A DNA stretch of 63,752 nt, counting the filler, from Parasitella parasitica NRRL 2501 (lineage: Eukaryota > Fungi > Mucoromycota), in NCBI GenBank assembly GCA_025201805.1. It is 10 parts of 10 records of this genome, joined end to end, with 100 filler letters (N's around TTAATTAATTAA, not from the genome) between each part and the next. Parts side by side here need not be neighbours in the genome. Positions count along the whole stretch, not along the records: positions 1 to 19,156 come from MU619347.1; 9 more parts are not named here. One strand, 5' to 3'. The notes under the pieces are model-generated. The model worked only from the letters and a program-made list of their open reading frames with translations. It was not told the DNA's origin and did no database searches. A program made the position numbers and the translations under genes. Of the stretch, positions 1,242 to 19,156 are shown piece after piece (within the stretch, counting starts at the first letter, position 1; each line of letters opens with the position of its first letter).

Positions 1242-2572
1242 TCAGTTATTTACACTAACACTACGGCTGTTACTAGGACTGCGGCTACGGCTACTACTAG
1301 GACTACGACTACGGCTACTACTAAAATCTCTGCTATCGCGGCGATTACGACGATATTGAGGTGATCTGCTACGGCTATAACTGTGACTATAGCTACGCCC
1401 TCTACGACGAATAGAGGATCTGCTACGACTGACACTATGACGATGCCTAATAGGTGATCTGCTAAGGCTCATGCTAGATCCAAGAGAGCGACGACGACTA
1501 ACAGGCGATCTACCACGGCTGACATAGCTTTGGCGACGACGAAGAATAGGCGATCTACTGTAACTTCTATTGCGAGGACTACGGCTGCGACTGTAGCTGG
1601 ATCTTCGACTGCGGCTACGGCTACGGCTATCACTATCACTTGAGTGGCTACTGATGCTGCTATTGCTACTACTACTACGACTAAGGCTACGGCTGACGCT
1701 GTAGCTAGGACTACGCTTACGAGATTTGCGAGGAAGTGGAGAGGCGCTCAAATCTCTAGATCTCTTCAAAGGTTTCTTTACGTCAACACTGGATTGCTCT
1801 TTCTCTGTTTTACGATTGCTTGCTTCTTTTTCTTTAAGACGCTTTTCTTCTGCCTTTTGCCGTTGGCGCTTTTGTTTTTCGATTTTTTCTTGGCGAGCAA
1901 TCTTTGCTTCGATTTCTGCCTCTCTCCTAGCCTTTTTTTCCTCTTTAAGCTTTGCCTGTAGATCGCGATCAAAAGCAGCACCTTCGACGTACTCTGATTT
2001 GATTTTAAGCGCTTTTTTCATCTTTTCATTTGCCTTTTCTTTTGCAGCGGCCAATTGATGTGTCTCGTATTCTTTCAGACTTTTCAACAGATAAGTACAA
2101 CCGACCATGGTACGTAAGCATAATGTTACTTACTTTCTGCTATCGGTTTGACTTTCCTTTTCAATATCTGCCATTAGTTGATCCCTTAAAGCCTGCACTT
2201 TTTCCTCGATTGCCTCCTCATCCAAGCTATTGGACATAAAGTGTTAAGTTGATTGAAGGGAAATAAGTGTGATGTAATTTACCCTTCATTTTCTAGTTTG
2301 ATAGTAAGCTCCATACATTTAACTTCGACTTTACGCTTGCGATCATGATCCAAAATGGCCATATTAGCCTTCTTTACCTTGGGATTTGATTTAAAATCAT
2401 TAATATTTCTATCTCTATCGGATGGAGGTGGTTTGACAAAAGACAAGTTGCGAATAACATATCCGTTGGTCCCTTTCAGTAAACATGGCTTTAATACACT
2501 CTACATGATATATGAATGCTAGCTAAAATTACCAGAACCACGAGGAGTGCTCAAGCCAATACCGTTATACAT
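1242..2572 (-). CDS. CWC21: Pre-mRNA splicing factor Cwc21/SRRM2-like, RS-rich C-terminus (multi-exon)
   Basis: Exon 1 from ATG at 2572 reads MYNGIGLSTPRGSG, then TNGYV. Later exons give a cwf21-type segment (LDHDRKRKVEVKCMEL) and a long RS-repeat tail. Confidence 0.93.
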
Positions 2573-2743
2573 GGTAAACTAAACAAGTGATATAAAGGGG
2601 AACGAAAAGCTTTAGCAAGCCTCCATTGCAGAAAGCTCTCAAATACTTGTTAAATCAGAGTCACATTAGATTGCCATGGCGAGCCCCTCATGTCGAATTG
2701 AAGCCCTTTTGCTTCCATAAAACTAATACAACTTACTTGGATA

Positions 2744-4965
2744 ATGAATATTGATGATATCTTCAAGGTAGCAAGCGCTTAGTTGAATTAGACTATCTCT
2801 TTAACGCGTTTATTGTGTTATAGGTTCCAGCTATCCCAACTGGCCGCAATAAAAGGAAAATGCCTGCTACTCCAGATATGGAATTCTTTGACAAGTACAA
2901 AGAAGCATCTAGTCTAGCTGCTGAACAAGCCGATGGCGAGCCTTCCTCTAAAAGAAGAAATATCGAAGAAGATCATGTTGAAAATGAGGACGAGCCATAC
3001 ATAGCTGAAAAATACCAAGACGAAGATGCCGCATTAGAGGACGAAGAAGGTAGATTTTTCGGCGGTGGATTGACAAGTGAGCAAAGCAACATCCTCGATT
3101 TAGTAGATGAATACGATGTAGATGAAGTAAGATAAATTTGGCTAGCTAACTTACATGTGTAAACTCTGATGCACTATGGCAGACTGAAGCATTGACAGCT
3201 ACCAATGTCAAAAAAATGATCCTCAAATTTGAGAAAGCCATTAACAAAAACCAAGAAATGCGAGTGCGTTATGCAGATCAGCCAGAAAAGTTTATGGAAT
3301 CAGAGGCCGATTTAGATGAAGAAATCAAAAACCTCTTAACACTGACTGAAGCGCCTCAGATGTATCCTGAGTTTGTTAAACTTGGAAGTGTTTCTTCTCT
3401 CATGTCACTTTTGAGCCACGAAAATACAGACATTGCTATTGACACAATCGACCTCATCAATGAACTCACAGACGAAGACGTTGGGGTTGGATCGTCTGAG
3501 GAGGAGATGGAGAGATCTGAACAAGTGCAGGTTTGCATCAAGGCTTTTGTTGATGCGATGGTAATTAGGAATTTGACGACTAATGAATTTTACTAAAAAA
3601 TTATGACTTAGTTGCAAAATGAACTCTTGCAACTGCTAGTAGAAAATTTAGGCAGAATGAACGAACAAGAAGAATCGGATCGCCAAGGTGTTTTCAAGGT
3701 TTTGGGTATTCTGGAAAATGTTATTTCATTAGACCCCAAATACGCACAGGATATTGCATTGAAAACTGATATTTTACCTTGGTTGCTCAAAAGATTACAA
3801 GTCAAAGAATTTGATGCCAACATTGGATATGCCAGTGAAATACTTTCAATACTTTTACAAGACGATAGAGGTAAATCAAGTTGTTTGTCCGATAGAAACA
3901 TATCATTCAATTGCAATTTGGCTAGATATTCGTTTAAAAGTGGGTGAATTAGACGGTATAGATATCCTTTTGAGAGCGTTATCCGTAAGTCCTTTTTTGT
4001 ATTACAAATTACTTCTAATCCAGCATTCTTAATAGGCATATAAACGTAAAGATGCTTCATCCGAAGATGAGACTGAGATGGTCGAAAACTTCTTTAATGC
4101 CATCTGCTCATTACTTAACGAACAAGAAAATAAGCAACGTTTCTTGGATTCTGAGGGTATCGAATTGATGGTAATTATGATCAAGTAAGTATCTTGGGGT
4201 TTTTTTAAATGAATAACCGTACGCTAATAAAAGTGCGTAGAGAAAAAACGCTATCTCGCATCAGAGCTGTCAAGGTGCTCAATTATGCACTCAGTGGAGA
4301 TGAAGGTGGCAGAGATAGGTGTATTCGGTTTGTTGATGCTTCTGGTCTCAAATCCTTATTTCCTTTATTTATGGGAAAGGGAAACAGAAAGTTAAAAAAA
4401 TCACACCACTCTGCATTTAATGAGTCTGAAGATGAAGGTAGATGCTTTCTCAACGGTAGCAACTTCAAGTACTAATTTTTTCTGTCTTTTAGAACACATT
4501 GCCTGCATTATTCTATCACTGCTGAGGTATCTCACCCAAGAAGATGTGCAAAGAATGAGATTACTGCTCAAATTCACCGAAGATGATTATGAAAAGGTTG
4601 ACCGTCTTGCTGAAATGAAGGAGCAGTACGAAAACAAAGATGATGCCGTCAAAAAAGAGCTTGAAGATGCAAGGGGCCATTTAGACGAAGAAGATCTTGA
4701 AGATTTCGAAGCTGATTTCTATGTCAGAAGATTGGATGCAGGCTTATTCACTTTGCAGCGGGTTTGTTTATTGATTGCAGCTTTAAGTGAAGAGAACAAG
4801 GGTGTGCGTGATAGGGCAACCATGTTGCTGAAAAGAAAAGGACAAGATATGTTAGGTGTGTTTAAGATTATTGAAGAAGAAACTGCCCTCATGGCAGACT
4901 TTATCTCATTAAGACGTATTGCAAAAGGTAATGATATCAAACCTTCCAAAGAAGAAAGCAAATAA
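2744..4965 (+). CDS. CTNNBL1: Beta-catenin-like protein 1 (Prp19/NTC-associated), multi-exon
   Basis: Motifs EEGRFFGGGL, KFMESEADLDEEIK, LLSHENTDIAI and RRLDAGLFTLQ. ORF pieces are joined by GT-AG introns. Confidence 0.93.
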
Positions 4966-5331
4966 TAAAAATATGTGCACATCATTATGGTGGGACACTG
5001 CAACGTTGACGTTAGAGGAATTACAAACTTCAAATATCGCAATACAATGCACCCTAACTTAAATAATATACAAACCTTGTAGTTTCATAAAACTTACATG
5101 ATTATAATGCTCGAGTTCACTATAACCGCTATACCCAAAATAATGATGCCGATGCTGCGCACACAGATGCGCGGCATCACGGAGAGAGTAATAAATAATT
5201 GGCATTTCATATTGAATATACCCAACAAACAATCCCTAGCCACTTCAACTGCACATTTCTACAATCAACTCTATTTCATCTGTTCCCTCACCCAAACATT
5301 TAGGCCACCAAGAGGCTGACAAATACAAATT

Positions 5332-5610
5332 TTATTTAACTTTATGTGGTACTTCAACAACCAAGTGTTCACCTGTAGTATACATTTGACTGATTGCAGC
5401 TTGACGTTTTACGACGGCTAGTTCTTGCTCTGCTTTGGCTACGAATGTTGCAATTTTTTCGGGTGATGTTTCTGTCATGTTGGAACGGAAAGAATCTCTT
5501 GAACGGCGAAGAGTATAATCTCGGAAATTGTAGGACGAAAACTTGTTTCCATGACGGATGAAATTACGATAAAGGGAAAGGACTTTTTGTGAGGACGCAG
5601 CAGTGGCCAT
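5332..5610 (-). CDS. ISD11: LYR-motif protein 4, Fe-S cluster assembly factor
   Basis: VLSLYRNFIRHGNKFSSYNFRDYTLRRSRDSF...ELAVVKRQAAISQMY is the LYRM4 signature. Likely start MATAASS at 5610. Confidence 0.92.
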   Translation of the reverse strand: MATAASSQKVLSLYRNFIRHGNKFSSYNFRDYTLRRSRDSFRSNMTETSPEKIATFVAKAEQELAVVKRQAAISQMYTTGEHLVVEVPHKVK

Positions 5611-6439
5611 TGTGAGTTGGTTGCGTTTATAAGAAAGTACCAAGTTTTCAGCAGGTGATGGGGTCATTTTAAGTGATTGACCTGAGGTGCGCCATAACCA
5701 ATCAACCTGATTAGTGACTTTCATCTCATCATCTCTATTACTATAACAAACTATTCATCCACATTTTGTTTAGGCCCCTTTTACTTGTTTTGTTTCCATT
5801 ATCATATTATTTCGTAAATATGATTAAAAAGCGTCGCTATATCCTGTTGATGAATCACGCTTGAGAACAAAAAAATACTAAACTGGTGTCGACAATAAGC
5901 AGTAATTGTGGACTCGTCAAAGGTTTGATCTCATTTTTCATTGTTAAAAAATGTCTCATTATTATTCCAGAGCTACGGTATATTAGAGGAAGTATTTTCG
6001 TCACTCTACACACAAAATAGGCACCAGCTGATTACCATATGAGTAGCACTGTGTATCATTTGAAAAAAAAATAGCAAATTTAGTCAGATCTGCGAGTAGG
6101 TTACCATAACAACTGAATGCAAATTTCACATTAAATTTCCATAGCAACTAAATAACTTGCAAAAGAAGCATGATTCCTTTCAACTTGTTCCTTCGAAAAT
6201 ATACAAACAAACCTGAATTAAGCGGATTTCCGATGACACAAAAGCAATAGCATTACCACCACCAGCGAAAACGCTTTAACTAATATCAAATGTGCGTATT
6301 TAACAGTCTTGAAGAAACCCAACGAATGAAAGTTTTTTTTTTTTTTTTTTTTTTTTTTTGGTATATTTTATGTTCATTTATTTTTTTATTTTTTTCCTCT
6401 TTCTTCTTCTTCATACTTACTTTTGTATATATATTTTTG

Positions 6440-7144
6440 ATGAAGGATACGATATTTGAAATGAAACAGGCAACGACGAGGGAAAATATTACCTATCACT
6501 TTCAGCCCAATGATCAATTAAATGCTATCAAAGATGCCATTGTAAAAAAATTTAACAGTAAACGAAAGTTGTCAACATCGTTATCCTCAATAGAAGAATC
6601 TCCCATAAATTTACAACACCATATTGGTGGATTGCCTTCACCGCCAGTCGAAGAAAAAAAGGTTATCTCTAAGCTACCTTCCCCAACTCCCACACAACCA
6701 TCATTAACTAGCCAAGAGATTCGAGAAAAGATTCAGCATTTAAAGGATGAGAAGCACAGGCTTTTCCAATTGATCAAACAAATGATGATGGAAGAAGAAA
6801 ACAAAAAGCGACAAGCAAAAACCCAGGAATTAGAGAAGAAACAACGAACATTACCACAATCAACTTCAACAACACTAGCACCGCAACAGCAAACCAAAAA
6901 GAGAAGTAGATGGGGAGCTCCAGCAGTAGATACATCTCCTTTCTACAGCAGCAATTCTTACTTTTATTCTCGTCCTCCATCACTTTCTCGATACAATTCT
7001 GGTTATCCTTATTCCAATGTAAGTATAGATGAACACAATTACCTTTTTTTTTTCTAAATGTATACTTTATAATAGCAACAGAGATCTAGACAACATCATT
7101 TACAGCAGTATTATCTACCATCCCGACCTCCTTATTCAAGATAA
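6440..7144 (+). CDS. Hypothetical protein with coiled coil and Pro/Ser-rich segments (one intron)
   Basis: ORF MKDTIFEMK...LPSPP...EKIQHLKDEKHRLFQLIKQMM. GTAAGT donor near 7019, acceptor at 7075, stop 7142-7144. Confidence 0.65.
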
Positions 7145-7733
7145 ATGAATCTAGCATGTCTGCCAACTGTTCCTTTTGTATAAGACTCCTCCTCAAAACC
7201 AAATCTTTTCTATATATTGTACAATACACTATTATCTTCTTTCTTAGTACCACCCTTTTGATCCACTCTACTCCACTCTCCCTACTCACTAAAAAACCAC
7301 ACCCGCCCATAAACACATATATATATATTACATTATCACTTTCCCCTCCTTTCTTTTATTACTATTACTTAATGTTTAATCTTAATCTGATAATAAAAAA
7401 TAACATCAGTAATCTTTTGTTTCAATAGGACAAATGAAAAAAAAAAAGTGATTGAATCTTTGCCACGTTTAACCAGTAAAATTAGATTTGTTTATTAGGT
7501 GAATGATTTGAGCATAATATTAAAAGGTAAAGGAAAAGGGACGAAAGAAATACATAAGAAATATAAGTCTATAATGTATAAATATATACTGATTCTATCA
7601 TATAAAAAATTGTTCTATAAATCTATAAGGGTTCACATATGACTTTGCAAAAGTCTGAGCATATAATTAAAATAAAGTAGTAGTTGTAAAAAAAAGGGGA
7701 GGGGGGTCGAAAGTAATTATTAATGAGCTTGCT

Positions 7734-8970
7734 TTAAGATGTTGGCTTCTTTGCAAGCCAACAATTAAAGCGAGAAAATCCGCGGTATTCTTCGAATTCT
7801 GCTAAAACTTCCTGCACAGCCATCTCATAATCCTCAGGCGAAATTCCCCATTTCGACACATAGAAGCTTTTTCTGTTACGTAAAAATGCCTTCTGAATTT
7901 CCTTATTGATAAAGCCGAATTGCTTTAATTCTAAAATCATATTAGCTTACAAAAAAACATGACACTTATCTTATTCAAATACTTACCAGAATCTTGGGGC
8001 CATTCACCAATGGGTATATCTATTGTTCGATGATCTAATTCTAAAAATCCAATCGCCTCGAGCTCCTTGGAAACGATACCAGTGAATGCAAAATCAAGAC
8101 CGTCCTCTACGCACTGATTTTGGTAAAATTCGTCAAACGCTCTTTGCACTGGGCCGGGATTATGGTGAACTAAATCAGCTTCCAGTAATTCAATCGTTCC
8201 TCCAGGTTTTAAAACTCGAAGCATTTCACTCAAGACATGAGACCATTGATCTTTTTGAATGCTTTGTCCCATATTACGTTGAAATATACTAGATGTAATA
8301 ATAAAAAAGTAAGTTACATACGTCAAATAATGCATTATATAAAATCTTACAAATCAACCGAATTAGATTCAAATGGCCATATTTCAGTAATATCTGCTTC
8401 GTGATAGTTTAAATTTTTTGGTCTTCCCTGCTGTTCGACAGGAGGGCGCAGATCAAGTCCAATGACTTTACAGTCGATCTGTTCAGAAGCCATTTCAAGG
8501 GCCCAAATCCCATTACCCGTGCCAACGTCTACAATTGTCATTGAACCTCCAATCTCACCCCATGTGTTGGATTTACGAGCGCTTTTCAACAAATAGTGCT
8601 ATTATATTCGATACATCAAAATATATTTACACACAAAGATTGACACCATGCTTACCAGTCTTTGAAGTCTGTCACTTTCTCTAAAATCTTCTTGGGCAAG
8701 GCTCTTTTTTCTACCAGAGAAAAATTCAGTAATGGATTGGCGTCTTGATTTTGTTGAAGCAGGCAAAGGCGGGATTGTGTGAATTAGAGTTGGATCTTGC
8801 TTTTCGTCGATCCAGTCATAGTTGGCTTGAATACTTTTTGTTGCCGCCATAATAAGAGAAGAATGAGAGAGACCACTCAAGGTAATCGTACTTCTGCGAC
8901 GGTTATTCTTTGAGCGTCTCTCTTTTCTTTCTTTTGATTTTTCAATCACTTTGCTTGCTTGATTTCCCAT
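7734..8970 (-). CDS. Class I SAM-dependent methyltransferase with putative N-myristoylation site (multi-exon)
   Basis: IVDVGTGNGIWALEMA (motif I), EMLRVLKPGGTIELLE and IPIGEWP. Starts MGNQAS (MGxxxS). Confidence 0.85.
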
Positions 8971-10540
8971 TATTATTGTGTTAAACTATAAAGAAGAAGA
9001 GAAAAGGGTAAAAAAAAAGAAATAAATGAAAGAATGAATTAAATACGAATAAAAAGAACGTGTAAATAAGGTTATAAAAAAGGGTTTTTTTTTCTCAGGA
9101 AAAAAGAAAAAGACAAGGAAAAAGGAGAAGAAAATGAAGCTATCGACAAAATTATACAAATTATATATTATCGGAATAACCAATCCGAACAATGGAATCT
9201 ATTATGTCGTACAGCTTAGAAACGATAGAATCGTACTGTTACAATTCTTTTGAGCTGCTGCACAGTAAACATTCATTCTCTTTTAGTTTAGTTACCATGG
9301 TAACTGAACTTTAGTCAAATAGCATGATCTGTTACTTTTATGTTTCATTCTGTTGCCATATGTCAAGTAGACAGCCGAATAACGAAATCTGATGAGCAAT
9401 TTTGCTATAGTAACCACCAGACGGCAATATAATATAAAAGGTATTTTACTAACGACGATCCGAGATTATGATTAGATGCATTAATTATATATATAGCAAT
9501 TCAATTTATCGTTTGGTTATAATTTGATTATATTCATTTATGAAAGATTGCCGTCCTGCAGGGAAAAAAGTATATATAATATATAGCGATGCATCATTTC
9601 AAAGTGAACTTGAAAATGCGTCATATGTGTGAAATGCCTTGCTTATATAATTTGCAAGTTGAACCTGTATCTAAATCAAGTTCCTTGCTTAATCAATATA
9701 AAATACAGTGCCACAGATGCTTTGGTTTTCTTTTCTTATTCTTATAATCAGGATTGTTAATCTCTGTACATTACACATTACAATAAAGAAAAAGTGAATA
9801 GGGAGAGAAAGACGAACGGATCCGAAATAAATGATAGTAGTTACCCAGCTGCATGGATTGTTCTAGGGCAACTTGGACAATTTATTGTATATTCGCGTGG
9901 CATGGTTAAAAGCTTTTTTAGGTGATACTTGGTAACTAAGATCGCCACGTTTAGATATATCCTTCTTGTTTACATCAAATATTACCTGCATCAATTATCA
10001 TCTGACAATCAACTGTTGTTTAACAACTATCCTCAGGTATACATTCATAGAGACATAAGTGGGTTCAATTCATTGTGATGTTTGTTTATTCAAATCTCAT
10101 TATTAAATTTAAATCCAACATTTGAGGTTTTGTTTGAGTCTTGAATCATTTTGCAGTTGCATACATGAGCTTATATGCCAATAAAAAGGCACTTGAGCAA
10201 TTATGCTCATAGGCCATTATTATGTGCAGTCTTCTTTCTGCTGTTATAGATTCTTCTCCGCACCTGCATAAGTTTTCGTATTAATATTGTTTCAATATGA
10301 AAAAAATGAGGTGTTTATGAACACGATACATGAGAATGACCATCAGATGCCTCTCTTTTCAATAGTAATTTTAATTTTACGATTCATTGGGATATTAAAA
10401 TGTAATGTTAAAGTATATCTGATGGCCAGATATTACACCACTGCTTGTGGGTTGATGCGTGGACTAGGGTTTTGCAATACTGTAACCATCGAACGGAAAA
10501 GGGTATTTTGACTTATGCTTAATACGCATAACAATGGCCT

Positions 10541-12236
10541 CTATCCCGAATTTTGGTTAAACAGTTTGACCAAGATTTCTTTGTATTGGTTTTGCCACGT
10601 ATTATCCTTGTATTCCTTGGCAACATTTTCACGTAGATAATCCAATTTTTTGGGATTTTTAACAAATAATTCCTAAGTAAAAATTGTCAAGATGTTTGCT
10701 TGTATTATGGCAATTGATTTTTTTTACCACAAATTGTTCTGATAAATCTTCGCTGTTCTCAAATATCAACCCGTTCTTCCCATCATGAACCAATTCATCC
10801 AAACTAATAAATGTAAGCATATCAGCCTTTGTGTCCGCCTCAACAACTTACCATGGAAAATTAATGGCGCAAACAGGAAGGCCGCAGCCAAACATGTCAA
10901 CGACCTTCATTGGAAGATCCATCCCGCTAGAACTGGTATGTAAAGAAACACCCAAATCTGCACTACCTAATAGTAATGGGTAATCTCCTGTCTCCAACCA
11001 AACTGTAATAATTCTGGTCTTTCTCAAGGTCATTTGTTTGATTTTTTCCTGATAAAGTTTCTTTTGTGGACCACTGCCAGTGATTACATATAATAATCGA
11101 GGATCTGAAGGCTTGGCTGATGCTTCGTACAATTCTACAGCCTTCAACAGGGCTGAAAAGTCTTCATCTTCAGTCCAACTAGTAGAGGATACAATCAATT
11201 TAGGTCGATCCTGTCTCCAAATCAAGTGTCCCTCTTTCGTGGCGTCGGTCAATAGTGTTCCCAATTCAGGATCATTGTATTTTCCCAGAAATGCTTCTCC
11301 TCCAGCTGTTTCCTTCACTAGATCTTCTATTACTTTGAGCGAATATGTGAATTGCCGGTGCGTTTGCTCAATACCCAAACGCTTGAAATCAGATTGAGGC
11401 TTATCACGCACTGTCAGAACTTGTCCTTCCACTTGCCAATTGTCTTTTAATTCTTTATGCATGGCTTCAGTGACGCACATGTGGGCAAAAGCGGTCTTGC
11501 CATAGCGTTGTTCGTACCATTTGGCCAAGCGCACCACTTTATGGTTCATGCCTAATTTTATGCCAAGAATGGAATACCCAAAATTATGCCAATCAATAAT
11601 AAACCACGATTTACGCATGTAGGCAACGAATTTAGCGATAAAGAGAGTGGGAATTGATGGTGGGTTCTACTTGCTGTATTAATATGCATTTTGAAAGACG
11701 AAAATTACACTAGTAATATAGTTTCGTACCTGGACGATAATAAAATCTGGTTTCTGTGAGATGCAACCCATAATCCAAAATAGCTGTACTGATAAAAATA
11801 TTGCCTTGAAAGGGGCCCATAGTAAATAGAAAGTCTTTGGAAAACCTTCGGGAATAGACCAAGCTTGGCGGATGGGTCGAACGCGGATATGCCGATTAAC
11901 ATTGACTCTGGCGCCTGGATTTGTTTCTATCATATCCTGAATTAATTGCCACGAATACAACTTGATTGAGTTAATTCAGTCTTTACCTGTATAACCTATC
12001 AAATCTACTGTACATCCTGAGTCTGCTAGTGAGGTAGCGTGATATCTCATACGTGGCGAACGCCCAATATCGCCCAATACAACCACTTGTACCATGAGTC
12101 GTCTTCGAAGTCCAGTACTTCCAGAGTTTTCAAATATGTACATTCCCAATAATCGGCCAAATATAACATAGACACAAAGGACAGCCATTAATGCGCCCGT
12201 AAGTGTAAAGTATTCACCTTCTGCTATCATCCCCAT
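10541..12236 (-). CDS. ALG1: Chitobiosyldiphosphodolichol beta-1,4-mannosyltransferase (multi-exon)
   Basis: [39 protein letters not shown] and [27 protein letters not shown]. Last exon ends ...KLFNQNSG*. Confidence 0.95.
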
Positions 12237-13029
12237 CGTAATTAATTCGTGTGAAGACTAGAGAAAAGAGGTTAGCGAAAAGAACTGGTTTGGTGCACGA
12301 ATTTCATTACACGAAAAGGGAGGTTGAAATCCAGTTACTTGGTCAAATTGCGAAGGCTGGCATACTGCCCATGCAGAAATTTTCATAGAAGGTTTTTATC
12401 CGCACATCTATTCAATATGCACATCCGTCAGATGCTGTTGAAGTACTTTCTTGGAGGTTATATGAGTACTGGGTACAATGGAAACACTGGATTATTAAGT
12501 CAAATTTAAGCAGCTATTGAAATTGTCTGCAATCTCTCAACATTAAAATACAGTTCGTATTGGAAACTATCCTATTGTTCAGAGCTATACTTTATTTAAG
12601 TTTTTTTTTTTATTCTGATACCAAATCCTCATTATGAGGTATATTCTATTCTTTTACCAGTAGGTTTTTTACTGGAAATCTCGAGTTTCCTGTGACTAAT
12701 GGAAAATGTGTTTTCGGCCGTAAATGCATATTTTTTTGTAATCATATGTCAATGTGATAAAACGAAAAAATTTCGAGTAATAACATTCTAGAACCCTTCA
12801 AAATTACATTTGCGTAGAATTTGATATTCGCATTTTATAGTGTCTTTTGTGGTAATAATAATATCCTCTCTCGGGAAACAACTTGAACGTTTTCTCAAAA
12901 TGATGCGATACTGGGGCATTTGAACGAAGTGATACCTCTTTCTAATGTGACCTTGCAATTGTGGCTTGATATAAAAAAATAATACCATTATCAATTGTAA
13001 ACCTTCTTTGATTTATCCAGATCTAGATC

Positions 13030-14175
13030 ATGCCAATCACTTCTGCCCGAGACGTTGATGATCCTTGCTATCAAGAGATTGTATCCAGAATCTATCTCGG
13101 TTCCTGTGAAGCTTTTAAAAAAGAAATTATCACCGAAAAAAAAATCACACATGTTCTCTCACTTGGTGATTTTGACAATGATTTAGATATTGAACTTGAA
13201 TATAAGGTACGAACAAATGAAATCATAAAAAAACCAAAAAATTAACTTATAAACAAGTAGAATATCAATATTATGGATATCGATGAGCAAAACATTATTC
13301 AATATTTTGATGAGACCAACGAATTTATTCAAGAGACGTACAAAGCAGGGGGCAGAATTTTGATACATTGTCAAGCTGGTGTGTCGAGAAGCCCTGCTGT
13401 GCTGGCTGCTTGTTTAATGAAATCGAAAAAGATCAATCATGATGAAGCTCTTGAAATCATCAAGCGAAAACGACCCAATGTTGCTCCCAATGCTGGGTTT
13501 TTGGAGCAACTTATACTATACTTTGATCTGGGATTCGATGTCGATGCCAAGCATGTAGAATATAGACGTTTTTTGGTAGCCAGTATGGCAGAAGAACAGA
13601 AAAGTTAGTGAAAGGGATGAAAATTGGGTGCAACTAAGTCTAATAATTATATAGATTATGGTTACATTGAACATGTTGCACTGGCTGCTGATCCAGAATA
13701 CACACCTTTGACATCAGCAAGCGACAACAAGGAATTCAAAGCTCTGAGATGTAGAAAATGTAGACGTATGTTGGTTGGATCAGAGCATGTGGTAGACCAT
13801 AAAGCAGGACAAGGCCAGATTTCATTTTCATATCATAAACGCAATTCGGACATCAGTGTTACCACTGCTGCAATATCTACTGGGGAGTCAGAAGTCAATG
13901 CATCTCTGAATAAAGTCAATGCCTCGTTAAACCCTCTGCTAGCATCATTAGCTATTCAAAATAACACATGCTCATCATATTTCATTGAGCCTATGCAGTG
14001 GCTAGAAGGGTTGATTGATGATGTGCAAGGGAGGATTGACTGTCCAAAATGTCAATGCAAACTGGGTGCTTATAATTGGTCTGGAGATCAATGCTCTTGT
14101 GGTCGTTGGATCACTCCAACTTTTATGTTGCATCGTAATAAGGTTGACGAGGTTAGAAATGTTACAAGGAAATAA
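13030..14175 (+). CDS. YVH1: Dual-specificity phosphatase Yvh1/DUSP12 with C-terminal Zn-binding domain
   Basis: Catalytic loop IHCQAGVSRS, then LRCRKCRRML and CPKCQCKLGAYNWSGDQCSCGRWITP. Confidence 0.93.
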
Positions 14176-14469
14176 ATATGCTTTTATCCGTCATTATTTG
14201 TACATAAAAATTTGAAAATATAAAGAAATTACACACTTGAGTATACATCATAAGGACGCTCATGAGATTTATTTTCAATAAACGAAGATTCTGACTAAAA
14301 ATTCCATCTCAATTCAAAATGCTCGCACAATCCTGGTAAGTAAGCATCTTTGTTGCCAATTAAAACTTACTCATCAAAATTACAATTTGTGGGGTAGAAA
14401 AAAATAAATAAAACCTCAACACTACACAAACATCCAATTTCTTTTCCTTGCTTACATTACAAAGAAGAT

Positions 14470-16325
14470 ATGAAATCCTACACTATTGAACAAGTAAAAG
14501 CTCATAATAAACCCAACGATTGTTGGATCATAATTGAAGGAAAGGTATTTGACGTTACAAACTTCTTGTCCGAACATCCTGGCGGAAAGAAAGTTCTTGC
14601 TAAAGTGGCTGGCAAAGATGCAACCAAATCCTTCAAAATGTTCCATAACGACTCTATTATGCAACGTATTGGTCTTCCTATGCAGATTGGAGTTATCGGA
14701 ACTGATAAAGCCGCTGAAGAGAAACCTCAAAAGAGCACGGTTACAACCATTAACCCTAGCTCCATTCGTAATGCCACTACTGCTGTATCCAATAGTTTGA
14801 CGAATAATCAAGTAGCTAAATTTGGCGAGGGCATTCCCTATGGTGATCCTTCGTGGTACCAAGAATGGAATAGGTATGTTGAATGGCAATTTTTGCATGA
14901 TCTTATCTGACCTAATTCCATGTATAGCCCATATTATAACGAGTCTCACATCAAAGTTCGTAATGCAGTGCGTGAATGGGTTGAGAAAGAAATCACCCCC
15001 TTCTGTCATGAATGGAGCGAGAAGAAAGAGATTCCCAAGTCTGTTTTGAAGAGTGCTGCCAAAATCGGGTTTCTTGCTGCTGTGTCTGGCGCTGGCACTG
15101 ATCCCAAGATGGCCCATTTATTGCCATATGGCTTGCCTGGAGGCGTAGATCCTGCTGAATTTGATATCTTTACTGAATTTGTTTGTATGGATGAATTGGC
15201 TAGATGCGGTTCTGGTGGACTTATCTGGGCATTAGAAGGAGGCCTTAGCATTGTAAAGTTAATCAAACAGTTCACGATACTACATAAATTAACTTTATAT
15301 GTATAGGGTCTACCTCCTGTTATCAACTTTGCCAACGAAGAATTGAAAAACAGAATTGTCCCTGAATGTCTTGCTGGTGATAAGGTCATTTCTTTGTGCA
15401 TCACTGAACCTTCTGCTGGTTCTGATGTTGCAAACCTTGCCACCACCGCTAAAGATATGGGCGACTATTTCCTTGTCAATGGCGAAAAGAAATGGATTAC
15501 TCAAGGTGCTTTTGCAGACTACTACACTGTTGCGGTCAGAACTGCGGAAGGACAAGGTATGGAAGGCATCTCGCTTTTGCTGATTGAGCGTACGTTTCCT
15601 GGTGTAAACGCTAGGAAGATGGACTGTCAAGGCATGTGGGGCTCAGGTACCTCATACATTACATTCGATGATGTCCGTGTACCAAAAACACATTTAATCG
15701 GCGAATTAAACGAAGGATTCAAGTATGTGATGCACAATTTCAATCATGAAAGATTGTCTATCGTTATGCAAGCGAGCCGCCTTTCTCGTGTGTGTATTGA
15801 AGAAGCATTAAAGGTAATATTCTACGACAAAGTTACACAAGTGTTTAGAAATCTTACGTCAAACACGCTATTACACAGTACGCATTGAAGCGCAAGACTT
15901 TTGGACAGCGCCTTGTTGATCATGCAGTTTTGAGAAACAAGTTTGGACATATGATCCGTCAATGCGAGGCTACACATGCTTGGCTAGAATCGATTTTGTA
16001 CCAGTACAAAACTCTTCCTCATGAAACTCAGGCTACGATCTTGGCTGGTCCGATTGCCTTGTTAAAAGCGCAATCTACTCAAACATTTGAATACTGTGCC
16101 CGAGAAGCTGCCCAAATATTTGGTGGCCTCGCGTACACTAGAGGTGGGCAAGGTGAAAAAATTGAGAGACTGTACAGAGAAGTCCGAGCATATGCGATCC
16201 CTGGTGGATCTGAAGGTAAACAAAGCTTAACTTGAAATATTTAACCATGCTAAACCCTCTTTGATTTAGAAATCATGCTTGACCTCGGCGTTCGTCAAGC
16301 CATAAAGAAATGCTCAAAATTGTAG
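14470..16325 (+). CDS. Cytochrome b5 / acyl-CoA dehydrogenase fusion protein (multi-exon)
   Basis: b5 motif FLSEHPGG, then ACAD motifs LCITEPSAGSDVA, VNGEKKWIT, NFNHERL, QIFGG and AIPGGSEEIMLDLG. Confidence 0.92.
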
Positions 16326-16723: not shown

Positions 16724-18419
16724 ATGCTGTCATCTTCTAAACTGACTTAACTGGTGTTAAGGCCTCATGTTGGTAGCGACGGCAAGCATATCAATGTTAG
16801 AAGCAACTTTTACCGAGTCAAGGCTATTCCTACATGCAATATTTATCATTATAATATTGCCTTTGAGCCAGTTGTTCCTGATAAAAAGTGCCACGCGATT
16901 TGGGATGTCTTCCAAAAGACTATTGATCAAGAGCATTGTGCTGATGCCAAACCTATCTTTAATGGACGTAAGAATGTCTTTTCTGCGGTATCATTGAATT
17001 TCGGCAAAGAAGAAGCTTAACAGTTTACGGGTAAGTCTGATATGATGAAAAGATATTATTTATACAAGCCAGTATACGATAAACAACAGGTTGACCTCAC
17101 TTCTTATCCTGCGTTTGGTCATAGCTCCAAGAACATCTTCAAAATACGTATCAAGCTCGTCAATGTAATAAACATGAGTGAGTCGCAATTGTTCTTGGAT
17201 GGAAAGGCTGAATGTACTCCCAACTGTCTTACGGGTTCGTATCAACAATTATTCAGTTATTTTATGATAATGTTTGTTTACCAAACACAAAACAATAGCT
17301 ATTATAGTTTTGAATATTCTTGTTCGTTATTTACCATCATGTATTCATTATACGTTTGGCCGCACAATTTTCACAACTGATCGCAGACAGCCTTTCCAAA
17401 CGGCGCTGAGATATGGCAAGGATTCTATTAATCCGTTCGTCCCGCAGAAGGTAGACAGTTTGATTCGTTTCAATACAAAAAGTAAAAAGCTAAAGTTTGT
17501 GTTATCATGCAGGCCAACTCTTTGTCAATATTGGTGTGTGTGTGCTACTGCTGTTTACGAGTCTGGCCTAGTGCCTGATATTGCCCCCAATATCCTCAAT
17601 AAGCGTCATCTTGATGAATTGAGAAACGAAATTAGCCCTCAAGATTTACAATTGATCACCAAAATGCCCAAGGCATGCATCATTCAGGTCAACCATTGTG
17701 GGGAACGAAAGGGCTTCTTTAAAATTACAGGACTAGGCCCTTCTGCCAATCAGTTGAAGTTCACTAATGAGGAGGGTGTAGAGCAAACTGTGGCTGCATA
17801 CTTTATCAAAAGACATAACAGTCTTTTAAACTGTCCATTCCTGCCTTTGCATCCAGGTAAAGAAGGACATTTTTTTGCCGATGAAGGCGTGTGAACTAGC
17901 TGCTGATCAACGCTACAACAGAAAACTGAATGCAAAGCAGACATCTGAATTTATAAAGATCACCTGTCAACCACCCAATGTCCGTGTTAATAAAATAACG
18001 AATAACCTGAAATTGTTAAGCCATGAGTAAAACACATTCTTTAAAAAAGTCGGTATGGAAGTTAACCAAGAAATGGAGGTTATCAAGGCACGCGTTCTGA
18101 AGCCTCCTTCATCAAGTATCTCGCCACGCAGCCTACTTTTATTCCACAGGATGGCTCTTGGAGTTTGGGAGGAAAAAAACTAGCAGAAACTGCCACCTTG
18201 AACTCTTGATCTGTCACCAACTTTGCTGCTCCTCTCAATATACAAGCTTTAAAAGTTCTCATTAAAGAGATATGTGGAACTATGTTTACCTTTGGATTGG
18301 GAGTCGTGAATTGTGAACCACTTGTGCTCAGCGCAGACCTCTTGGGAGACATGGAACGTGTCCTGAAAGAGGCTTTTCTGAAGGCAGGCAATGCCGCTAA
18401 ATCTAAACCCCAAATAAAT
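16724..18419 (+). pseudogene. Argonaute pseudogene (N, L1, PAZ, L2, start of MID), no PIWI in view
   Basis: RPHVGSDGKHINVRSNFY, YHY, PIFNGRKNVFS, ATAVYESG, LKFTNEEGVEQTVAAYF and PQDGSW. In-frame stops at 16748-16750 and 17018-17020 plus frameshifts. Homology stops just before the transposon end. Confidence 0.88.
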
Positions 18420-18611
18420 GTAAGAGAATTACTGATACAGTCTAATACAGTTGACGAAACTAGGTTGGGCCAATGAAAATAAATTTTGGTCATTTCCAAA
18501 AATGGGCCACGAATACGAAAATGGGACAACAAGATGAAAATGGGACGTTTATATGAAAGTGGGACATGAGTACAAACATGGAGACAATGTTAGTATCTTT
18601 CAGAAGAATCA

Positions 18612-18700
18612 GAATTGTTACAGCTTCTAACCTGCAATATCTTTAAGTTGCTGACTCACCGGAGTGAGCAGCAACAACCACATTGGAGGTGGCGGTATGT
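18612..18700 (-). ncRNA. Candidate Fanzor omegaRNA scaffold overlapping the ORF 3' end (boundaries uncertain)
   Basis: Hairpin GTTGCTGCTCAC-TCCG-GTGAG(T)CAGCAAC (18675-18647) with a cUCCGg tetraloop, flanked by weaker stems. Confidence 0.5.
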
Positions 18701-19156
18701 CTTTTGAAGACCTGGGGGCGGCCATTTCCACACCAAATTGATGTGGCAATGGTGAGCATGTTCTTCGAGGCCACGACATCGCGATTCCAGTAAATATTGC
18801 AAGTTTTACACTTCAATAACTGATAAATTTTGGTTTCTTCGTTGTCATGGCTTATCTTGAAATTCTCCAGATCTTCTTTGAGACAGTTGTTGCAGATCTA
18901 TGAATAATCGGTTTTAGCTGAAAGTGCAATATGTGAATTATGTGTGTTTTTTCCTTAATAACCTTCGATGTTTTGAACTCATTAATATCTACAAGTAATA
19001 GTTCACCAATTCTTTCTCTTGCTTGTAGTTACTTGTATATTGTGTTCGAAACACCATATCTTAAACCTCTGAACTTTATATGATCTTTGTTTTTTAACCC
19101 GTCACCAAAGACCACCAGAGGCATCTTACTTTTGTCACCTACTTCAAAACAAGCCT
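18643..19156 (-). pseudogene. Fanzor1 (TnpB-like RuvC nuclease) C-terminal part, one intron, one premature stop
   Basis: Manual translation: MPLVVFGDG...IYK*LQARERIGELLLVDINEFKTSK / intron 18962-18898 / ICNNC...LLKCKTCNIYWNRDVVASKNM...GRPQVF. This gives a RuvC-II Glu, a CxxC...CxxC zinc finger and the RuvC-III NRD motif. Confidence 0.88.

Follow-up and report, generated by a model that had tools for sequence, protein, structure and literature searches.

Identity of the window gene

A minus-strand gene piece at positions 18643–19156 of the DNA stretch analyzed here, which comprises 63,752 nucleotides of Parasitella parasitica NRRL 2501 (hereafter, the window), raised three questions: whether it encodes a Fanzor1 RNA-guided nuclease, what kind of element carries it, and how such an element would make its guide RNA. 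As a whole, the locus was interpreted as a decayed Tc1/mariner-type Fanzor1 element of a family for which homing, a spliced guide, and transfer between species are proposed, and we rate this full account slightly better than an even chance.

The first-pass annotation had described a hidden, spliced Fanzor1 gene absent from the ORF track. The gene is missing from that track, and the NCBI annotation already models it as BD408DRAFT_423041, a TNB-domain protein with a PF07282 match. Translation of the minus strand reproduced the proposed peptide, PLVVFGDG...DINEFKTSK, ending at 18963. The visible part of the second-last exon occupies 18963–19156 (−) and contains the RuvC-II Glu codon (18980–18978), the translation aligning with DEYKTS of SpuFz1. 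The GT–AG intron is exactly 65 nt long, as had been claimed (18898–18962, −), and its junction was spliced identically in models predicted independently for three other Mucor assemblies and for other P. parasitica copies (NCBI models P0158, P0159, P0153, and P0402). The last exon, stop codon included, spans 18643–18897 (−) and reads ICNNC...CKTC-NIYWNRD, with a C4 zinc finger (TNB) and the RuvC-III Asp of NRD at codon 18780–18778 (−). The C4 finger was found as described, but the spacer between its CxxC pairs has 24 residues instead of the claimed 23. The PF07282 profile matched this exon with an E-value of 5e-4, below the cut-off. The gene piece is not truncated by a contig end, the left end of the element being readable farther along the contig.

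Fanzor1 proteins are defined by a Glu near a C4 zinc finger followed by RD (PMC3627910, PMC13565253), and in the window gene the catalytic Glu is located a few residues before the C4 zinc finger, with RD after it. SpuFz1 was the top PDB sequence match of the window last exon (E 1.5e-4), and the only one of a sibling RuvC-I exon (E 1.2e-3) and of an 821-aa full-length relative (E 5e-10). For spliced genes, the queries were single exons or proteins taken from databases. The AlphaFold model of this relative had a pLDDT of 85.6, and a fold search with it matched SpuFz1, PpFz1, and GtFz1 with E-values of 4e-20 to 1.5e-15. These three proteins held all of ranks 1–7 (E 1.5e-15 or better), the next match had an E-value of 1e-5, and Cas12f, Fanzor2, and TnpB lay far behind. 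Two outcomes speaking against the assignment had been named beforehand, namely, a lack of alignment to TnpB/Fanzor and a lack of the RuvC-I Asp in fuller copies. The SpuFz1 sequence matches and the structure prediction both fit Fanzor1; RuvC-I is not readable in the window copy and is known from relatives, appearing as VDPG in siblings C185 and C99 and as D515 in the 821-aa relative. Judged by sequence matches, RuvC motifs, and predicted fold, the window gene is a Fanzor1, as the first-pass annotation had proposed.

The 821-aa gene models, among them CAO0791515.1, are uninterrupted, have six exons, and were found in M. circinelloides strains; two of them have an intact D-E-D. One 821-aa M. circinelloides copy, P0404 (L062), has NRN in place of NRD, a change that is natural in GtFz1 and activating in SpuFz1 (PMC11423790). 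The dN/dS between this family and related families was approximately 0.2, which indicates that the protein was maintained by purifying selection, and that among close copies of the family was 0.4–0.8. Identity with PpFz1 was rejected because the two share 14% identity and no PDB sequence match was obtained, and a transposase fusion, considered for long frames of 900–1200 aa, was rejected because those frames were N runs. The P. parasitica genome also contains several further Fanzor1 families with 33–55% identity.

Element structure, insertion site, and decay

The suggestion that the gene rides on a DNA transposon was borne out by terminal inverted repeats (TIRs) and a TA duplication. Approximately 30 P. 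parasitica sites share the same TIR tip, and all 19 copies with two ends had TIRs with TA on both sides. In the window, the right TIR (18448–18570) is approximately 120 nt long with subterminal repeats, has its partner at C111:20946–21064, and adjoins the TA target-site duplication at 18446–18447. From the TIRs and the TA duplication, we infer a non-autonomous element of the Tc1/mariner type with the window gene at its 3′ end. In a complete M. flavus copy, Fanzor was the sole gene and no transposase ORF lay inside. In the search for a cognate transposase, none of the listed DDE_3/DDE_1 matches lay between TIR pairs (150 of 388 DDE_3 candidates scored; interiors partly N).

The element splits an Argonaute pseudogene, whose 5′ half lies at 16724–18447 (+) and whose Piwi half runs from C111:21067 onward. 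Removing the element and one TA restored the Argonaute frame, giving IQSN-NVPNPKRQY against IKSNNVLRPNKQY in the M. circinelloides ortholog. The pseudogene (window 16724–18447 with L031 3567–4470) has five stops, four frameshifts, and deletions of its own, while the syntenic M. circinelloides Argonaute is intact, with 846 aa, three introns, and an ago-2 or ago-3 type. Elsewhere in the P. parasitica genome, a single further Piwi gene was found (C3, open frame of 695 aa). A loss of RNAi through the insertion was not accepted, since the Argonaute decayed independently, a second Piwi gene is present, and ago-1 alone is needed for silencing in Mucor. Upstream, window 1242–16235 contains host genes for an SR-rich protein, ISD11, a methyltransferase, ALG1, and a dual-specificity phosphatase, with beta-catenin-like 1 and cytochrome b5/acyl-CoA dehydrogenase identified by eye; the gene order is largely common to M. 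circinelloides.

The premature TAA reported earlier is present at 19029–19031 (−), and its origin from CAA fits the siblings, which read KQLQARE with CAA. The accompanying view of a recently inactivated copy with one lesion had to be abandoned, as the window copy was the most diverged of the ten P. parasitica copies in the tree, with the longest terminal branch (0.035 vs. a tree median of 0.017). It measures 2617 bp compared with 3.6–3.9 kb in 15 of the 19 measured copies (assuming that N runs keep their length), being approximately 1.2 kb short, and it was the only copy whose 3′ donor was mutated. Of the copies measured, this one has decayed furthest. Lesions were present in all P. parasitica and M. 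flavus copies readable at length, except in the visible part of C185.

Other elements were observed in the course of this comparison. The right TIR of the C185 copy is interrupted by a Tc1-type transposon that has a transposase frame (L007 2110–3440). A sister TIR family with a CAGTCG tip occupies approximately 10 sites, mostly of 4.4 kb (C9, C39, C42, C56, C61, C64, C72, and C162 of G000), and a 180-bp miniature of it lies on C6 of the same assembly. Near the left end of the window element, L031 3245–3270 resembles window 18610–18630 just past the 3′ donor (14/15 nt), possibly as a relic duplication.

Predicted target motif and proposed homing

Oriented along Fanzor, the left flanks ended in TTA in 20 of 20 cases and in ATTA in 16 of 20. 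T at −3 was found in 20/20 left flanks against 5/22 mirror positions on the right (Fisher p 1e-7), and A at −4 in 16/20 against 8/22 (Fisher p 0.006). ATTA also preceded seven of seven Mucor copies, including one copy of the sister family. In the case of SpuFz1/SPu-1, a one-sided upstream motif proved to be the measured TAM (PMC10432273, PMC11423790). By this analogy, 5′-ATTA is the likely TAM of the window family. A one-sided ATTA TAM would imply that the right flank serves as the guide; following the SpuFz1 architecture (PMC10432273), the guide segment was predicted at 18431–18445 (−), where it would target the empty Argonaute allele.

What Fanzors do biologically has been described as an open question (PMC10432273). 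For intact copies of this family, a homing role appears reasonably probable by analogy with TnpB and Fanzor work. The TIRs and TA duplication suggest that a transposase acting in trans would have moved the element into TA sites. Fanzor would then bind RNA from the element 3′ end, recognize 5′-ATTA, and cut empty alleles, after which repair would copy the element back. As uninterrupted M. circinelloides copies and a predicted TAM are available, homing could be tested in a native host, and gene knockouts are established in M. circinelloides (PMC3720535).

Organization of the 3′ end

The 3′ end of the element shows the following order of features on the minus strand: stem-loop 1, a short linker, UGCAG, a GTAAG donor, TACTAAC 37 nt on, and then AG. 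Donor, branch box, and acceptor are thus ordered as in a U2-type intron. Stem-loop 1 of the predicted omegaRNA (18647–18675, RNAfold) overlaps the last codons, and UGCAG (18632–18636) was predicted from folding and pairing to be the 5′ strand of stem-loop 2. The candidate 5′ splice site past the stop codon (18626–18631) reads GTTAG here and GTAAG in the other 26 ends examined. An internal CUGUA (18619–18623) can close the same stem in unspliced RNA. These are followed by the candidate branch box TACTAAC (18589–18595) and by a candidate 3′ splice site, TAG (18460–18462), which is the first AG after the branch box and lies 12 nt inside the element end.

Donor and branch box were found together at 13 of 14 right ends and 0 of 14 left ends, against a background frequency of 0.03–0.04 per kb. 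The donor block had a substitution rate of 0.003 and the branch box one of 0, compared with 0.024–0.032 nearby, although these counts are not independent because the copies share ancestry. A 7-bp stem can form between the candidate exon ends, with UG at its base set against the duplicated UA, as in SpuFz1 (computed on separate pieces). The distance from branch box to acceptor is 133–137 nt, which is long for a fungal intron. An AG-poor tract is also present at the left TIR; since the tract belongs to the TIR, it does not count separately in favor of an intron, and AG depletion was dropped as evidence. Earlier AGs occur in a single sister copy and in a single Cokeromyces copy, and in Cokeromyces it is the internal CUGUA pairing that is kept. 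Covariation of the predicted omegaRNA, stem-loop 1 included, was not above shuffles in our own alignment, and Rfam gave no match for the region.

Similar layouts were found beyond this family. A ghost element of another family in M. circinelloides (L058) has a 7-bp first stem, UACGG, a donor, a branch box, and the same acceptor; it is a 930-bp internally deleted Fanzor element (17702–18635) whose TIRs are related and whose predicted omegaRNA region is complete. Soil contig L065 shows the layout in part, with UACAGU ahead of the donor. Sequences from paper supplements were compared by eye and not computed: in this way, the donor/branch/AG pattern was seen in ROr-1, ROr-2, ROr-3, MCi-1, PBl-1, and PBl-2 (PMC3627910), with 2–24 nt between the AG and the element end in those elements whose end is defined, and PBl-1 was seen to change both stem strands (UACC with GG+UA). 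According to Saito et al., the yeast-derived RNAs of two different P. parasitica Fanzors share approximately 25 nt after UGCAG|GTAAGC, and one of them ends in the branch box and pyrimidines. Sharing of this kind is unlike a flank-derived guide, which would not be common to two Fanzors. PpFz1 cut DNA in vitro, and its scaffold sequence and numbering appear to match the unspliced form (PMC11423790).

Proposed spliced omegaRNA and alternative explanations

Based on these features, we consider the chance that the omegaRNA is spliced in the window family to be even or marginally better. Because the right TIR is approximately 120 nt long, the scaffold would be placed 190 nt inside the element end. 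A spliceosomal intron would remove the stretch between scaffold and end, including the long TIR. After splicing, UGCAG would pair with the last bases of the element and the duplicated TA, and the flank would become the guide. Spliced and unspliced RNA may also occur side by side, in which case the latter would be a precursor or a decoy.

Alternatively, the omegaRNA could be left unspliced, with the scaffold closing on the internal CUGUA, a fixed guide encoded by the element, and splice-like signals that are relics or serve to trim the mRNA 3′ UTR. The internal stem has 6 bp in every copy, with both bases of a G-C pair changed, to A-U, in Cokeromyces; in other families, hairpins containing the donor can be drawn by eye; and PpFz1 is active with a read-through scaffold. 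However, a fixed guide cannot target an empty site, and the one-sided ATTA bias would be left unexplained. Moreover, the donor lies in the loop and the pairing needs no GTAAG, yet donor and branch box are conserved. This alternative was considered unlikely.

We also doubt, more strongly, that a long unspliced omegaRNA uses the flank as its guide, either by pairing UGCAG with the end over a loop of approximately 170 nt or, like SpuFz1, by having the whole scaffold in the last 75 nt. The terminal pairing could form in unspliced RNA, and the GtFz1 omegaRNA has 150 nt, but donor and branch box would have no explanation. For a contiguous SpuFz1-like scaffold within the final 246 nt there was no support, as this stretch folds no better than shuffles (z −0.45).

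It seems improbable that Fanzor is carried as inert cargo and that an asymmetric preference of the transposase causes the ATTA bias. The lesions in the P. parasitica and M. flavus copies readable at length (the visible part of C185 excepted), the dN/dS of close copies, and subterminal repeats that differ between the two ends fit this explanation, whereas the dN/dS between families and the D-E-D kept in 821-aa models do not. The TIR tips are nearly identical, and a strictly one-sided preference is not expected from a mariner dimer with such tips.

If the omegaRNA is spliced as preferred here, splicing would be a eukaryote-specific way for a compact guide RNA to coexist with long transposon ends. 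It would follow that PpFz1 natively uses another guide than the one published, and yeast screens of Mucorales Fanzors may have supplied them with RNA that was not processed. No description of a spliced omegaRNA was found in a search of papers on Fanzor and splicing that covered only a minority of subscription papers.

Probable horizontal transfer among Mucorales

The element, TIRs and introns included, is 92–97% identical in M. flavus, M. circinelloides, and M. atramentarius. The pooled element dS was 0.041 against M. flavus, 0.069–0.145 against M. circinelloides, and 0.051 against M. atramentarius, while the corresponding host exons, calibrated on four host genes, gave 1.35 to saturated, 0.82–1.26, and 0.79–1.40, respectively. 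The dS among Parasitella copies was 0.02–0.05, and the pooled cross-species element dS was described as no more than that. The Mucor copies occupy TA sites of their own, and the genes beside them are 67–77% identical to their Parasitella orthologs.

As the element dS of 0.04–0.15 is far below that of host genes, which is 0.8 to over 2, recent horizontal transfer between Parasitella and at least three Mucor species is very likely, to judge from these sequence comparisons. The copies form one star in the tree, which gives no direction of transfer. Vertical inheritance or assembly contamination is a most improbable source of the identity: all hosts are Mucorales and the calibration comprises only four host genes, but the M. 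flavus element and host dS differ so widely, non-coding parts are as similar as exons, and the Mucor copies have their own sites and host neighbors. Since Parasitella is a mycoparasite of Mucorales (PMC11423790), mycoparasitism is a plausible transfer route, and the near-identity across species would be a concrete case of the transposon transfer speculated for Parasitella in the same paper. The assembly G6F42 ('Rhizopus arrhizus', P0289 and P0403) was not counted as a host because it groups with M. circinelloides in both ALG1 and Fanzor; it is probably misnamed or mixed.

Taken together for the long-TIR Mucorales Fanzor1 elements, a spliced guide freed of the transposase-binding repeats and completed on the target-site duplication, an unspliced look-alike whose guide is fixed and does not target and which corresponds to the PpFz1 yeast form, and recent transfer between mycoparasite and Mucor were given an even chance.

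Comparison with known systems

The gene itself is one more Fanzor1, and its closest counterpart is SpuFz1/SPu-1 of Spizellomyces punctatus (PMC3627910, PMC10432273; PDB 8GKH). SPu-1 is likewise a Fanzor1-only element with TIRs, a TA duplication, and a one-sided upstream motif including TA, and its scaffold stem closes on TA, as predicted for the window family. SpuFz1 is the best sequence and fold match, yet the identity is only approximately 17%. SPu-1 has a single exon, a 33-bp TIR, a contiguous omegaRNA at its end, and the motif CATA, whereas the window family has six exons, a TIR of approximately 120 nt, a scaffold predicted 190 nt inside the end, and the predicted motif ATTA.

PpFz1 (PMC11423790; PDB 9CF0-1) comes from the same species and has the same fold as the window family (E 6e-18). 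It shares stem-loop 1, the short linker, and UGCAG|GTAAG, but it belongs to a different family (14% identity, no PDB sequence match); its published omegaRNA runs through the donor, and its TAM was reported as ATN (PMC11423790). The Mucorales elements ROr-1/2/3, MCi-1, and PBl-1/2 (PMC3627910) are mariner-type or unassigned, mostly with a TA duplication and with intron-containing Fanzor genes, and by eye they have the same donor, branch box, and terminal AG at the 3′ end. The TIR sequence of the window family was not found in the examined part of the supplements of PMC3627910, the main text of which does not mention introns.

Splicing and guide formation also overlap at the 3′ end of IStrons, which are TnpB transposons that are group I introns (10.1101/2023.11.20.567912). 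The whole IStron is reported to self-splice from host RNA, and splicing competes with the guide. In the window family, by comparison, the guide would arise through a spliceosomal intron that lies within the element.
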